Source of the DNA: Macrostomum lignano
Taxonomy: Eukaryota
DNA: 64,000 nt
Direction of reading: 5' to 3'
NCBI GenBank assembly: GCA_002269645.1
Contig: NIVC01000390.1
Coordinates: 411,436 to 475,435 of the forward strand
The number at the start of each line of letters is the position of its first letter. Positions within the stretch are counted from its first letter, which is position 1. Below are positions 37,061-45,248 of this stretch, piece by piece. The position numbers were made by a program, and so were the translations under genes. Below the pieces are notes generated by a model. It was not told the DNA's origin, searched no databases, and saw nothing but the letters and a program-made list of their open reading frames with translations.

Positions 37061-40000
37061 ATGGCTCTTTTGCCTTTCCGCTTTCCTGCGCTGCATTTTC
37101 TGCTGACTGCATTGGCGATTTGTAAGCAATTTGTAACATTCGGGAATATTTATTATTTTAAACTAAATTTAGGAACTTTTAGATTCATATATTCATCTGC
37201 AGCCTTCTTCCAGTTTTTTTAAAGTAGTTATTCTTCTTTTACGGGTAAAACTGAAAAAACTGTATCTTATCAATGGGCTACTAACATTCAGCCTAGATCC
37301 CAATCCCATCTCAGTCCAGATCCCAATCCCATCTCAGTCCAGATCCCAATCCCATCTGAGTCTAGATCCCAATCCCATCTCAGTCTAGATCCCAATCCCA
37401 TCTCAGTCCAGATCCCAATCCCATCTCAGTCCAGATCCCAATCCCATCTCAGTCTAGGTCCCAATCCTATCGGAGTCTAGATCCCAATCCCTTCTCAGTC
37501 TAGGCCCCAATCCCATCTCAGTCCAGATCCCAATCCCATCTCAATCCAGATCCCAATCCCATCTCAGTCCAGATCCCAATCCCATCTCAGTCTAGGTCCC
37601 AATCCTATCGGAGTCTAGATCCCAATCCCTTCTCAGTCTAGGCCCCAATCCCATCTCAGTCCAGATTTCAATCCTATCTCAGTCCAGATCCCAATCCCAT
37701 CTCAGTCCAGATTCCAATCCCATCTCAGTCTAGGTCCCAATCCTATCTGAGTCTAGATCCCAATCCTATCTGAGTCTAGATCCCAATCCCATCTCAGTCT
37801 AGGTCCCAATCCCATCTCAGTCCAGATTTCAATCCCATCTCAGCCTAGATCCCAATCCCATCTCAGTCTAGATCCAATCCCATCTCAGTATAGATCCCAA
37901 TCCTATCTAAGTATGGATCCAATCCCATCTGAGTCCAGATCCCAATCCCATCTTAGCCCAGATCCCAATCCCATCTCAGTCTAGATCCAATCCCATCTCA
38001 GTATAGATCCCAATCCTATCTAAGTATGGATCCAATCCCATCTGAGTCCAGATTCCAATCTCACCTGAGTCCAGATCCCAATCCCATCTGAGTCCAGATC
38101 CGAATCCCATCTGAGTCCAGATCCCAATCCATATACTAAAAATCCCATCTGAGTCCAGATCCCAATCCCATCTGAGTCCAGATGCCAATCCCATCTGAGT
38201 CCAGATGCCAATCCCATCTGAGTCCAGATCCCAATCCCATCTGAGTCCAGATCTCAATCCCATCTCAGTCTAGGTCCCAATCCCATCTCAGTCTAGATCC
38301 AATCCCATCTCAGTATAGATCCCAATCCCATCTGAGTCCAGATCCCAATCCCATCTGAGTCCATATCCCAATTCCCATCTGAGTCCATATCTCAATTCCC
38401 ATCTGAGTCCAGATCCCAATCCCATCTCAGTCTAGGTCCCAATCCCATCTCAGTCTAGGTCCCAATCCCATCTCAGTATAGATCCCAATCCCATCTCAGT
38501 CCAGATCCCAACCCCATCTCAGTCTAGGTCCCAATCCCATCTTATTCTAGGTCCCAATCCCATCTGAGTCCAGATCCCAACCCCATCTCAGTCTAGGTCC
38601 CAATCCCATCTTATTCTAGGTCCCAATCCCATCTAAGTCCAGATCCCAATCCCATCTGAGTCAAGATCCCAATTCCCATCTGAGTCCAGATCCCAATCCC
38701 ATCTCAGTCTAGGTCCCAATCCCATCTCAGTATAGATCCCAATCCCATCTCAGTCCAGATCCCAACCCCATCTCAGTCTAGGTCCCAATCCCATCTTATT
38801 CTAGGTCCCAATCCCATCTGAGTCCAGATCCCAATCCCATCTGAGTCCAGATCCCAATTCCCATCTGAGTCCAGATCCCAATCCCATCTCAGTCTAGGTC
38901 CCAATCCCATCTCAGTCTAGGTCCCAATCCCATCTCAGTATAGATCCCAATCCCATCTCAGTCCAGATCCCAACCCCATCTCAGTCTAGGTCCCAATCCC
39001 ATCTTATTCTAGGTCCCAATCTCATCTGAGTCCAGATCCCAATCCCATCTCAGTCCAGATCCCAATCCCATCTCAGTATAGATCCCAATCCCATCTCAGT
39101 CTAGGTCCCAATCCCATCTGAGTCCCGATCCCAATCCCATCTGAGTCCAGATCCCAATCCCATCTGAGTCCAGATCCCAATCCCATCTGAGTCCCGATCC
39201 CAATCCCATCTGAGTCCAGATCGTAACGAGCGAGCTAAAGTATTCGAATGCATTTCACTACTCGGTATGAGTAGAATGCGAGAATTTTATTGTAATTTTA
39301 TTATTGTCAGCAGCCAGCCTGGCTCCGCCAGCAGAATCTGCTGCCGCCTGGAGCTATCGATGGCGCAACTTGAACGCATCCGACAGTGGCGGAGGCTGCA
39401 GTGCGACTTTGCAGACTGTCGACCTGGCTGATCACTTCCGGGAGGCTTTGATCGACATTGTGGTGTACCAGGCCCTTGGAGGTGCGTAAAAACAGGGCCA
39501 CTGGTAGGATTTCTACTAAACCCCCCTTAATGTAGTTCTACGAGTACTGTTAATAAAATTCTGTACTTTCAGAAATAGCTAACAAAACCGAGCAGCCTGA
39601 GGCCTGCGGTCTGCAACGGAACATTTTGGACTACGTGTCTAATCAGCTGGACACCAAATCAGGTTGGTAAAAGAGATTTTCAGTTGTTCTCTAATTAGCT
39701 CGTAGTTAGTTGGTTACTTGGTTAGTTAGTTAGTTTACGTATTTGTTTGTTTGTTTGTTTATTTGTTTATTTATTTGTTTGTTTGTTTGTTTGTTTGTCA
39801 GTTAGTTAGTCAGTTAGTTAGTCAGTTAGTTAGTTAGTTAGTTTAGTCAGTTAGTTAGTTAGTTAGTTAGTTAGTTAGTTAGTTAGTTAGTTAGTTAGTT
39901 AGTTAGTTAGTTAGTTAGTTGGTTAGTTAGTTAGTTAGTTAGTTAGTTAGTTAGTTAGTTAGTTAGTTAGTTTAGTCAGTTAGTTAGTTAGTTAGTTAGT

Positions 40001-43000: not shown

Positions 43001-45248
43001 CGGTCAAAGCGCGCTACGTAGCCTTCCTGAGCAGCTTGCAGGACCTGATTTCACTGTTAAACTACCCGGAAGCTGAGATGGACATTGACTACCTGACCCT
43101 GCTGACCACCGAGTCAGTCGGCGTCTCGGATGCGGCCTTTGTTGACAAAAAGAACGTTGGCCTGGGCACCCTCAGCCTGCAGCTGGTCTCGTCTCCGGCC
43201 CCTGCCTTCGCCGCCTTTGTCAACTATAGCCTTACAAAACTGCCACCGAATCCTAATAACATCTCTCGGTGGGACCGGTTGTACTTTGAAGACGCGCAGC
43301 AATGCTACTTGCCTGGCAGTTTCCAGCGCAATCCGGCTTTCTCCCAGGCCTGTTTGCAGTCGCTTGTCGAGGTAAAAAACGTTGTTTGGTAAAAAGTAGC
43401 GCTTTTGTAGTGGTTTACGCATGGGGTGATGCTTCTACAACTTTGGGCTAGGTTCGCCGAGGGTCAGAAAATGGGGCGGTGCCTGTAGCACCTTTCGCTC
43501 CTGCTGTAGGCTGTTCGACCATACGCTAACAAATTTATCTTGCCAGCTGCAATGGGTCTCTTTGACGGCGCACTCAATCTCGAAGTCAACAGCTCAGCAA
43601 AATAATACCATTCTAATCAATCGTAAATCAATCATTGAGACTTATAATTTTACTAATCTAGGGACTATGCAATCTGTTCAAGAGATCAGTAGTACGAGCG
43701 TAACTTAGCTGCATCCAATGCTCACTTTTTAGAGGCATCCCATCACTGAAGTTGAGTCCCGATCTCCATTTGTGATCGACGCCACCGCCACCCTGGTGCT
43801 TGGCACCTTGACAGCGATGACCTACCTGTGCCAGGTGACCACACCGGAGCCGGCCTGCCCCGCATTCTTTGCCGGCGACTTTGGCGGCATGCTGCAGCGC
43901 GCCAACCTGGTCATGTACGGCAGCGTGGCTAGCAGCGACCCCCGGCCGCAGGGATTCAGCGGCAGCTATAACGGAGTGGCTTGGTCCTACCGGAAAGTGT
44001 TCGACAAGCGCATGGGCCGGACTCCGTTCTCGCTGTGGCAGTACAGGAAGGTGGGCTCGGGAGACTATCGCTTTGTTCAGGTGAGTCGCTTGTGAATGAT
44101 GAACCTGCTTACTAACTAATCAACCTGATCATTAGCCAATGAACCTGCTCACTAGCCAATGAACCTGCTCACTAGCCAATGAACCTGCTCACTAGCCAAT
44201 GAACCTGATCACTAGCCAATGGACCTGCTCACTAACCAATGGACCTGCTCACTAACCAATTAACCTGCTTACTAACCAATGAACCTGCTCACTAACCAAT
44301 GGACTTGCTCACTAACCAATGAACCTGCTCACTAACCAATGAACCTGATCACTAGCCAATGAACCTGCTCACTAACCAACAGACCTGCTCACTAACCAGT
44401 TAACATACTCACTAACGAAAAAAGCAGTCCCTCAACAAACTAACCAAATTTTCTTTACACAAAATATGAAGAGTGTGGCCTTAGAGCACAAAAGAAAAAG
44501 AAGTCCTGAGTTTAATTTTTTGGCCCCTTATAGACCCAGTACGCTTGAATTTATTGCTATTTGATAAGAACCAGAAATCCAATTAGTTTTGACACGCTGT
44601 CATCCAGCTGTCACAACTGTCAACTTGTTATCTGACCCTTTGACACTACTTGGGGAAGATGCCTACGAAACAGAATACCTTATTTATACTATATACTCGT
44701 GGCCAACTACTCGTGAGTAGAGTTTAAACCATTTCCAAACCTTTTGTGCAATATTCTATCTCTACGAATTCTCTCAATGCGTCACCCGCCAGATTGGCCT
44801 ATTCGACGGAGACAGCTCTTCGAGTTTCACCGAGACCGCTGAACAGCTGCAGTCGATGGAGCGCAGCTTCTCTGCCACAGCCGGCGACTCATGCCGCACG
44901 AAGGCCCAGTGCAGCGTCAGAGACACGCAGTGCGCCAACAGACCGAAGACGGCGCACTCGCCAACACCAAATCCACGAGACGGGAATGTGACTAACAAAG
45001 ATTCCGGCGGCGGAGGTGTCTCTCTGGGCTTTCTGGGACTGCTCATCTTCCCCGGCTTCCTGTTGGGCTTCCTGCCAATCTGCGTCTACAACCTGTGCAT
45101 CAAGCTGCGCTCCTCCGACGACAATCAGTCGGATGTGTCCGCCTCAGCCGAATACGCCAATAACGAGAGCTTCCGGAGCGGCAAGGCCAATGTGGGAGGC
45201 GACTATCCATGGTGCAGCAACGGGAACGGATCTGGCAGTATGGCCTGA
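37061..45248 (+). CDS. Single-pass type I membrane protein with two tandem Venus-flytrap (ANF_receptor / mGluR-like amino-terminal) domains, ~1197 aa. Exons 37061-37121, 39311-39481, 39573-39662, 40664-40926, 41167-43371, 43733-44080, 44793-45248
   Basis: Signal-peptide exon MALLPFRFPALHFLLTALAI ends at a GTAAG donor. Phases 1,1,1,0,0,0 are consistent; 3594 nt total. mGluR/CaSR-type motifs: GDIYLGVLVPV, GYVVLDTCYS, VVGFVGALSS, PLISYGSTSTALS, YPFVIRTVSSD, YISVVYASSAYG. One hydrophobic segment (VSLGFLGLLIFPGFLLGFLPICVY) is followed by a short tail and a stop. Confidence 0.8.
37293..39222. repeat. Minisatellite, ~23-bp unit (intron 1 of the Venus-flytrap gene)
   Basis: AGATCCCAATCCCATCTCAGTCC and variants. 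Confidence 0.97.
39705..40632. repeat. (TTAG)n/(TTTG)n microsatellite (intron 3 of the Venus-flytrap gene)
   Basis: Directly visible. Confidence 0.98.
44097..44420. repeat. Minisatellite, 20-bp unit (intron 6 of the Venus-flytrap gene)
   Basis: AATGAACCTGCTCACTAGCC. Confidence 0.95.

Follow-up and report, generated by a model that had tools for sequence, protein, structure and literature searches.

A single-pass membrane protein of the flatworm Macrostomum lignano with an mGluR-type Venus flytrap and a probably flytrap-derived N-terminal domain

The class C Venus flytrap (VFT) is, in textbook terms, a ligand-binding module grafted on a seven-transmembrane (7TM), cyclase, kinase or channel chassis. 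In ionotropic glutamate receptors (iGluRs), an amino-terminal domain (ATD) resembling LIVBP and ANF_receptor modules is stacked on the ligand-binding domain (LBD); the ATD binds no agonist and serves assembly and allostery. SmGBP of Schistosoma mansoni is a protein of ~485 aa resembling metabotropic glutamate receptors (mGluRs), with a single VFT and without cysteine-rich domain (CRD), 7TM region or C-terminal transmembrane (TM) helix; it binds glutamate experimentally, is enriched in the surface membrane and has homologues in S. japonicum and planarians (PMC3206071). Flatworms thus have functional class C flytraps that lack a 7TM region. NPR-C consists of a VFT, one TM helix and a 37-aa tail, and signals through that short tail (PMC6628360). 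The Venus kinase receptors (VKRs) of flatworms and insects, first found in a flatworm, combine a VFT with a single TM helix and are activated by amino acids (PMC4038586, PMC2680970). Tandem VFTs on a single TM helix are known from the receptor adenylate cyclases of Trypanosoma (PMC6027212) and from the bacterial BvgS/EvgS kinases (PMC5573083). Here we describe a gene of Macrostomum lignano at positions 37061-45248 of a 64-kb stretch of DNA (64,000 nucleotides, hereafter the window) taken from assembly GCA_002269645.1, contig NIVC01000390.1, where contig position 448,442 is position 37007 of the window. The gene is intact and expressed, and encodes a type-I membrane glycoprotein that spans the membrane once and has 1178 aa; GenBank and UniProt contain it already, only as an uncharacterised ANF_receptor entry. 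We propose that the protein may sense amino acids or serve as a co-receptor subunit, without catalytic activity of its own; it would have a duplicated VFT unit, be dimeric and be coupled through its tail or a partner. We assign this reading a probability of about one half.

From the N-terminus, the protein comprises a signal peptide, an N-terminal domain of ~490 aa (hereafter N-domain), a CxxxCxxC linker, a membrane-proximal flytrap (VFT2), a stub containing three cysteines, one TM helix and a tail of ~48 aa. An earlier reading of this DNA from its letters alone (the sequence-only reading) had started from the premise that the fold is normally attached to a 7TM region, a guanylyl cyclase or a channel. 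NPR-C, the VKRs and SmGBP show that premise to be too narrow, and the trypanosome cyclases are themselves tandem-VFT, single-pass proteins. The mGluRs (e.g. 1EWK) are the nearest solved kin of VFT2, with which they share the contact set, the lobe-2 cysteine (C254) and the C378-C394 pair; unlike them, the Macrostomum protein lacks NCD3G, having the three-cysteine stub instead, lacks 7tm_3, having one TM helix, and carries an extra front domain of ~490 aa. Compared by description, SmGBP is likewise a flatworm mGluR-like VFT without CRD and 7TM region, but the Macrostomum protein alone has a further domain at its N-terminus and, beyond the VFT, a cysteine stub followed by a TM helix and tail. NPR-C, which is dimeric, shares the ANF_receptor-fold ectodomain, the single TM helix, the short non-catalytic tail and the absence of a 7TM region; it has one VFT and binds peptides, whereas the Macrostomum VFT2 is mGluR-like by sequence. 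The VKRs differ in possessing an intracellular tyrosine kinase like that of the insulin receptor, for which no counterpart was found in the Macrostomum protein or downstream of it. In the Trypanosoma cyclases and BvgS/EvgS, a pair of VFT-type modules stands in series on the outer side of the membrane ahead of one TM helix, as may be the case here, but these proteins possess catalytic domains (cyclase, histidine kinase) and belong to a sequence class unrelated to the mGluR-type VFTs, and in the Macrostomum protein the VFT nature of the first module is weakly supported. The iGluRs, finally, set two clamshell-type modules in series, making the ATD a plausible functional analogy for a degenerate N-domain, whereas the Macrostomum protein lacks Lig_chan and its proximal module is of the ANF_receptor type rather than an LAOBP-type S1S2 LBD. 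Neither the identifiers of the genes nor the topic of animal receptors with two Venus flytraps, double or tandem, led to a description of the family in the literature searched. Each single feature has a precedent; the specific combination is not described in the searchable literature.

All features of the gene lie on the + strand. VFT2 occupies 42214-44810 (aa 526-1033), with introns 5 and 6 inside the span, and on sequence grounds its assignment as a genuine mGluR-type Venus flytrap is solid. Pfam analysis of the whole protein revealed ANF_receptor (PF01094) at aa 624-861 with E=8.6e-27, a sub-threshold match to Peripla_BP_6, and nothing else. Of the solved structures, the mGluR1 and mGluR5 flytraps came closest (E ~1e-20), followed by other mGluRs, T1R3 and CaSR. 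These matches bear out the sequence-only reading, which had placed a second flytrap here. No NPR was found among the 60 best PDB sequence matches (mGluRs, T1R3, CaSR), and these matches do not place the protein in the NPR clade. Residue equivalents were obtained from a HMMER alignment mapped onto mGluR1 numbering. Six of the mGluR1 positions that contact the amino acid are retained in VFT2, four of them identically (S165 as S674, T188 as T697, D208 as D717 and Y236 as Y745) and two with conservative changes (D318 to E825 and K409 to R921). Cysteine C254 corresponds to C763, and the pair C378/C394 to C889/C905. Given what is established for class C pockets, this residue pattern fits an alpha-amino-acid moiety, not necessarily glutamate. 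Judged by these residues, the membrane-proximal VFT appears able to accept an alpha-amino acid as ligand.

The remainder of the chain is that of a type-I membrane protein. Its hydrophobic N-terminus fits a signal peptide, consistent with what had been claimed from the letters alone, and its ectodomain contains 11 NxS/T sites. The inter-domain linker SECPASCPEC (42184-42213; Cys518, 522, 525) is invariant in the three M. lignano paralogs described below. The juxtamembrane stub SCRTKAQCSVRDTQC (44889-44936; Cys1061, 1067, 1074) stands at the position of the nine-cysteine NCD3G of class C receptors. NCD3G itself (PF07562) gave no Pfam match at E<=1 in the protein, VFT2 and the TM helix are separated by a stretch with only three cysteines, and the paralogs are alike in this respect. 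By Kyte-Doolittle analysis there is exactly one segment of TM-grade hydrophobicity in the protein, at 45018-45098 (aa 1103-1129, peak 2.38). The cytoplasmic tail (~48 aa) is encoded by 45099-45245, and two tyrosine positions in it are kept across the paralogs (EY1148ANN and GGDY1165PW). The sequence-only reading had anticipated one TM helix with a short tail, and both were recovered.

It had also claimed that neither a 7TM region nor a catalytic tail is present, with which the domain searches agree. In the protein, Pfam found no 7tm_3 (PF00003), cyclase or kinase domain, and neither a Lig_chan pore nor an S1S2 ligand-binding domain. When + strand open reading frame segments of at least 40 aa between 45249 and 64000 were searched with Pfam, nothing relevant (7tm_3, cyclase, kinase) was found; such a scan could miss exons of fewer than 40 codons, and tblastn likewise found nothing. 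In the latter search, four full G-protein-coupled receptors (GPCRs) of class C used as queries against the whole 64-kb window matched the VFT2 exon only, with no 7TM match. Two small annotated genes downstream are without any Pfam domain. Several known classes could be set aside on these grounds: an iGluR subunit, for which the Pfam scan returned neither Lig_chan nor an S1S2 domain; a VKR, there being no kinase domain in the ~48-aa tail or downstream; and a receptor guanylyl cyclase, there being no cyclase domain in the protein or downstream. As for the class C GPCRs, the VFT is present but NCD3G and 7tm_3 were not found.

Three M. lignano paralogs have the whole architecture in common and are ~45% identical outside one tract: the window protein (BOX15_Mlig019918g2, P0001), BOX15_Mlig025594g1 (P0002), encoded in the opposite orientation on this contig at a distance of ~175-190 kb, and BOX15_Mlig007438g1 (P0007), a separate paralog. 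In all three, the N-domain, the CxxxCxxC linker, the VFT, the three-cysteine stub and one TM helix are followed by a tail of 48-55 aa with the two tyrosine positions; overall, tail identity between paralogs is 20-30%. Apart from the M. lignano paralogs, a word-indexed protein search recovered only a few V2R/CaSR proteins of vertebrates, and no homologues from other flatworms. The exceptional tract, ~1.5 kb of exon 5 at 41162-42650, shares 95.6% DNA identity and 97% protein identity with the P0002 gene (L002 10991-12479). It starts 5 bp before exon 5, and its flanks are too diverged for blastn, with ~45% protein identity. On this pattern, the tract looks like the product of gene conversion between the inverted paralogs. 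Within it, the ratio of nonsynonymous to synonymous divergence (dN/dS) is 0.23, indicating purifying selection; outside it the ratio is uninformative, dS being saturated (pS 0.85).

The N-domain is encoded by 39340-42183 (aa 31-515, introns within the span), with a VFT-like core at ~aa 160-225 (40876-41313). We consider it probably an old, degenerate duplicate of a unit comprising a flytrap and its cysteine stub, because several independent weak signals agree on both family and register. Alignment of an N-domain profile with a nine-sequence VFT profile using hhalign gave a score of 32.7 (P=0.0029), with N-domain residues 134-197 aligned to VFT2 residues 185-247. Column shuffles scored 16.5 +/- 2.6, none of 279 reaching the observed score; none of 134 block shuffles reached it either, and the reversed profile scored 17.7. 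Column shuffling breaks secondary-structure periodicity and is a lenient control. In paralog P0007, N-domain residues 133-207 matched positions 96-170 of the Pfam ANF_receptor hidden Markov model (E=0.036, under the gathering threshold), and this N-domain gave a colinear Smith-Waterman alignment of 224 residues to VFT2 (z=3.9) in which the lobe-2 cysteine and the crossover cysteine were aligned. A CaSR-like protein of Xenopus matched window positions 41176-41493 by tblastn (E=0.11). Both modules end in a three-cysteine stub, and their invariant cysteines are all pairable in an mGluR-like order.

The leading alternative is that the N-terminal ~490 aa form an unrelated, Macrostomum-specific alpha/beta domain, so that the protein has one VFT only and a double VFT was over-read from coincidences of motif. 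The direct tests on the window's own N-domain all run in favour of this and against a duplication. Pfam is blank for this domain, BLASTP against VFT2 gave E=1.8, Smith-Waterman comparison with shuffles against three VFT2s and an mGluR1 fragment gave z<=0.8, a three-sequence hhalign against VFT2 gave a probability of 0.2%, and PDB searches with phmmer and profiles yielded chance matches only. Even in the nine-sequence comparison, the HH-suite probability is just 10.7%, the confident core spans 63 columns, and one segment of the P0007 alignment showed two alternative registers. AlphaFold models of the N-domain, built from alignments of 4-5 sequences only, were unreliable (pLDDT, the predicted local distance difference test, 41 for the window protein and 37 for P0007; predicted template modelling score, pTM, 0.30 and 0.32). 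Searches of these two models with Foldseek gave E-values that were all >=0.009, none being <=0.001, with template modelling scores of 0.1-0.2. A phmmer search of the N-domain against 1.84 billion representative proteins found five relatives, in M. lignano alone and in no other organism, and at the sequence level the domain is lineage-restricted; a word-indexed search with its profile found nothing, the method being unsuited to relatives at ~25% identity.

Conversely, the weak signals for a flytrap (hhalign with its controls, the paralog's Pfam match, the frog CaSR-like match and the paralog's Smith-Waterman alignment) share register and family. Only a very small part of the PDB consists of class C flytraps, yet flytraps of class C, GABA-B or iGluR-ATD type made up ~40 and ~30 of the best 50 Foldseek matches to the two poor models, an enrichment that is a hint only. 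Both models show beta-alpha-beta alternation in the core region. Furthermore, the length of the domain, the order of its cysteines and its trailing cysteine stub mirror VFT2. Taking both sides together, we regard an unrelated domain as somewhat unlikely. The sequence-only reading had called this region a first flytrap and had described its lobes as echoing those of VFT2. The first claim gains convergent sub-threshold signals in one register, while the direct tests of the window's own N-domain were negative and the models poor. For the window's own sequence, the echo was not recovered by pairwise or three-sequence comparison, but the nine-sequence profile reproduced it in exactly the register that had been proposed.

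The mechanism that we favour is built by analogy with the ectodomains of class C receptors, NPRs and VKRs (PMC6628360, PMC4038586, PMC3206071), together with established knowledge. The N-domain, as a presumed old duplicate of the VFT and cysteine stub that has lost its binding residues, would play a role like that of the iGluR ATD above its LBD. The protein would dimerise via its VFTs, as do class C and NPR ectodomains, and VFT2 would close on an alpha-amino acid or a close derivative. The movement may then be passed to the TM helix and tail by the stub, tethered by a disulfide that is probably made with Cys763, since this residue is equivalent to mGluR1 C254, the lobe-2 cysteine bonded to the CRD in mGluRs. 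Two outputs can be envisaged: the two conserved tail tyrosines could recruit cytosolic partners, or the protein could act laterally on a signalling partner receptor.

Several points count against this proposal. Within VFT2, the region of mGluR1 Y74/R78 did not align, and the changes R323->S, S186->G and E292->S make glutamate itself a less likely ligand. In P0002, half of the six contact residues are altered (D->T, Y->F, E->Q), whereas P0001 and P0007 keep them; therefore, binding is not conserved across the family. The motifs of the tail are short and were judged conserved from three sequences. Lastly, ligand binding, dimerisation and signalling of this protein are all inferred by analogy. 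The same holds for the co-receptor, decoy or adhesion function suggested by the sequence-only reading, which stays an inference.

A second alternative is that the protein is a ligand sink or surface binding protein, which would bind amino acids without signalling and would buffer, clear or present its ligand, a role of the kind proposed for NPR-C in clearance and for the membrane-associated SmGBP. The architecture follows the logic of NPR-C (VFT, one TM helix and a 37-aa tail), although NPR-C itself signals via its short tail (PMC6628360). It follows equally that of SmGBP, a flatworm VFT without CRD or 7TM region that binds glutamate and is enriched in the surface membrane (PMC3206071). By Pfam, the tail has no catalytic or known docking domain, and it is poorly conserved overall. 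However, the two tyrosine positions and the three-cysteine stub are kept in all three paralogs at ~45% identity and would be needless for a pure tether, and the PDB relatives of the flytrap are mGluRs, not NPRs. We therefore hold a pure sink to be unlikely, and continue to prefer an amino-acid sensor or co-receptor subunit.

The VFT modules might instead serve as protein-protein interaction surfaces of a cell-adhesion or recognition molecule rather than as small-molecule sensors. Consistent with this, the ectodomain is large and glycosylated with its 11 NxS/T sites, P0002 has been retained despite the loss of three ligand-contact residues, and P0007 carries FN3-like repeats N-terminal to the shared core (fn3 E=5.7e-4, under the Pfam cutoff). 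These repeats, of which there are approximately three, lie at residues ~100-350 of P0007, between its signal peptide and its N-domain, and show that the family tolerates extra adhesion-type modules distally. The window protein, though, has no adhesion-type domain by Pfam, and the alpha-amino-acid contact set kept by P0001 and P0007 is hard to explain without binding of a small ligand. An adhesion function thus seems distinctly unlikely.

That the gene is an annotation artefact or a decaying relic, a truncated class C GPCR with its 7TM exons elsewhere or lost through mis-assembly or as a pseudogene, is highly improbable. In its favour, GenBank marks its entry as partial, the genome, highly repetitive as it is, has tandem arrays in three introns of this gene, and the Mlig_3_7 assembly is redundant (PMC5730564). 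Against it, the flag concerns the 5' end only, a clean stop is followed 490 nt on by AATAAA, no 7TM signal was found downstream by Pfam or anywhere in the window by tblastn, the same single-TM ending is found at three separate loci, the tract is under selection at a dN/dS of 0.23, and the models derive from RNA-seq (PMC5730564).

A conserved family under selection in which an mGluR-type flytrap, apparently able to bind ligand, sits on a bare TM helix and below a second, degenerate flytrap-like domain would add a chassis-free or partner-dependent mode to those known for class C flytraps, and would constitute a natural experiment in the readout of flytrap closure without a 7TM region. In its fullest form, the proposal would be of a new class of animal small-molecule receptor: dimeric, non-catalytic and single-pass, with a duplicated class C flytrap whose distal copy is degenerate and whose proximal copy senses an amino acid, signalling by tail tyrosines or a partner receptor, and arisen and expanded within Macrostomorpha. 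All of these elements together make a tentative picture, one that we judge improbable as a whole; if true, it would mean that the ectodomain of an mGluR has been re-wired for co-receptor signalling or for signalling that resembles that of immune receptors. To a specialist the finding is moderately surprising, because the gene is already in the databases and each feature has its precedent in SmGBP, NPR-C, the VKRs or the trypanosome cyclases. As a way of building an amino-acid sensor, the protein is unusual, though not without precedent. Since M. lignano is tractable to transgenesis (PMC5730564), the idea of a receptor is directly testable.

The gene model was rebuilt from three-frame translation and consists of seven exons with GT..AG at every border and consistent phases. 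The coding sequence of 3537 nt runs from the ATG at 37061 to the stop codon at 45246-45248, giving 1178 aa, ~19 aa shorter than the 1197 aa of the sequence-only reading (1177 aa with the GenBank acceptor described below). Its seven-exon chain and stop codon agree with the transcript-derived GenBank model, and the peptide strings that it quoted are all present in the protein. Our model corresponds to GenBank BOX15_Mlig019918g2 ("hypothetical protein ... partial") at 100% identity and coverage. The two differ in the acceptor of exon 2, for which the entry uses 39314 instead of 39311, giving 1177 aa, and in 18 extra residues that the entry translates from the 5' leader. The "partial" flag refers to the 5' end only, where the reading frame is open upstream of the first ATG. 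The GenBank annotation of the M. lignano assembly was built from genome-guided RNA-seq transcript assemblies with TransDecoder (PMC5730564), so that transcript evidence underlies the exon chain, the terminal exon included.

Exon 1 (37061-37121) supplies the start codon and most of the signal peptide MALLPFRFPALHFLLTALAI, ending in phase 1 at the donor GTAAGC; its ATG, in the context gcgccATGG, is the first of the transcript and the sole ATG within the 5' leader. Exon 2 (39311-39481) begins the N-domain and includes Cys50 and an H..EAL.D helix motif. Its acceptor is a tandem NAGNAG (cagcag, 39311/39314), which accounts for the difference of one alanine between the models, and both isoforms are possible. 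Exons 3 (39573-39662) and 4 (40721-40926) continue the N-domain. Exon 5 (41167-43371, 735 codons) encodes its final two thirds, the cysteine linker and most of VFT2, and exon 6 (43733-44080) the C-terminal part of VFT2, with Arg921, the equivalent of mGluR1 K409. Exon 7 (44793-45248) contains the end of VFT2, the three-cysteine stub, a Pro/Ser/Thr spacer, the TM helix, the cytoplasmic tail and the stop. The first AATAAA past the stop, a candidate poly(A) signal, lies at 45739-45744, ~490 nt into the 3' untranslated region. Among the paralogs, P0002 could be a subunit that does not bind ligand or is tuned in another way, which would recall the heterodimeric pairs known from class C.

An inverted repeat (45767-45855 and 45935-46023), with 89-nt arms that are 99% complementary and a 79-nt spacer, follows shortly after the candidate poly(A) signal and begins ~520 bp beyond the stop codon; it may be a foldback element or one resembling a miniature inverted-repeat transposable element. 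The upstream neighbour on the same strand, at ~27007-32815 (+; L001 1-5809), is annotated as a nuclear hormone receptor with zf-C4 and Hormone_recep domains. The '.g2' suffix in the name of the VFT gene suggests that the annotators cut it from a larger transcriptional unit. At ~58128-60049 (+), open reading segments with a coiled-coil-like character are followed by GVPLEEHLTKTGRQVAYVIDVCTAAL, probably belonging to another gene that runs toward the end of the window. The segment looks like the beginning of a RhoGAP domain preceded by a BAR-like region; Pfam returned only sub-threshold DUF5423 and Prefoldin_3. Introns 1, 3 and 6 of the VFT gene consist largely of tandem arrays (37288-39222, 39703-40633 and 44099-44416) made up of a 23-mer repeated 84 times, TAGT repeated 232 times and a 20-mer repeated 16 times. 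A related 23-mer array lies immediately upstream of the gene (34996-36560). Dozens of minisatellites with periods of 15-48 bp occur across the window, and account for the extreme blocks of GC/AT skew in its composition profile.

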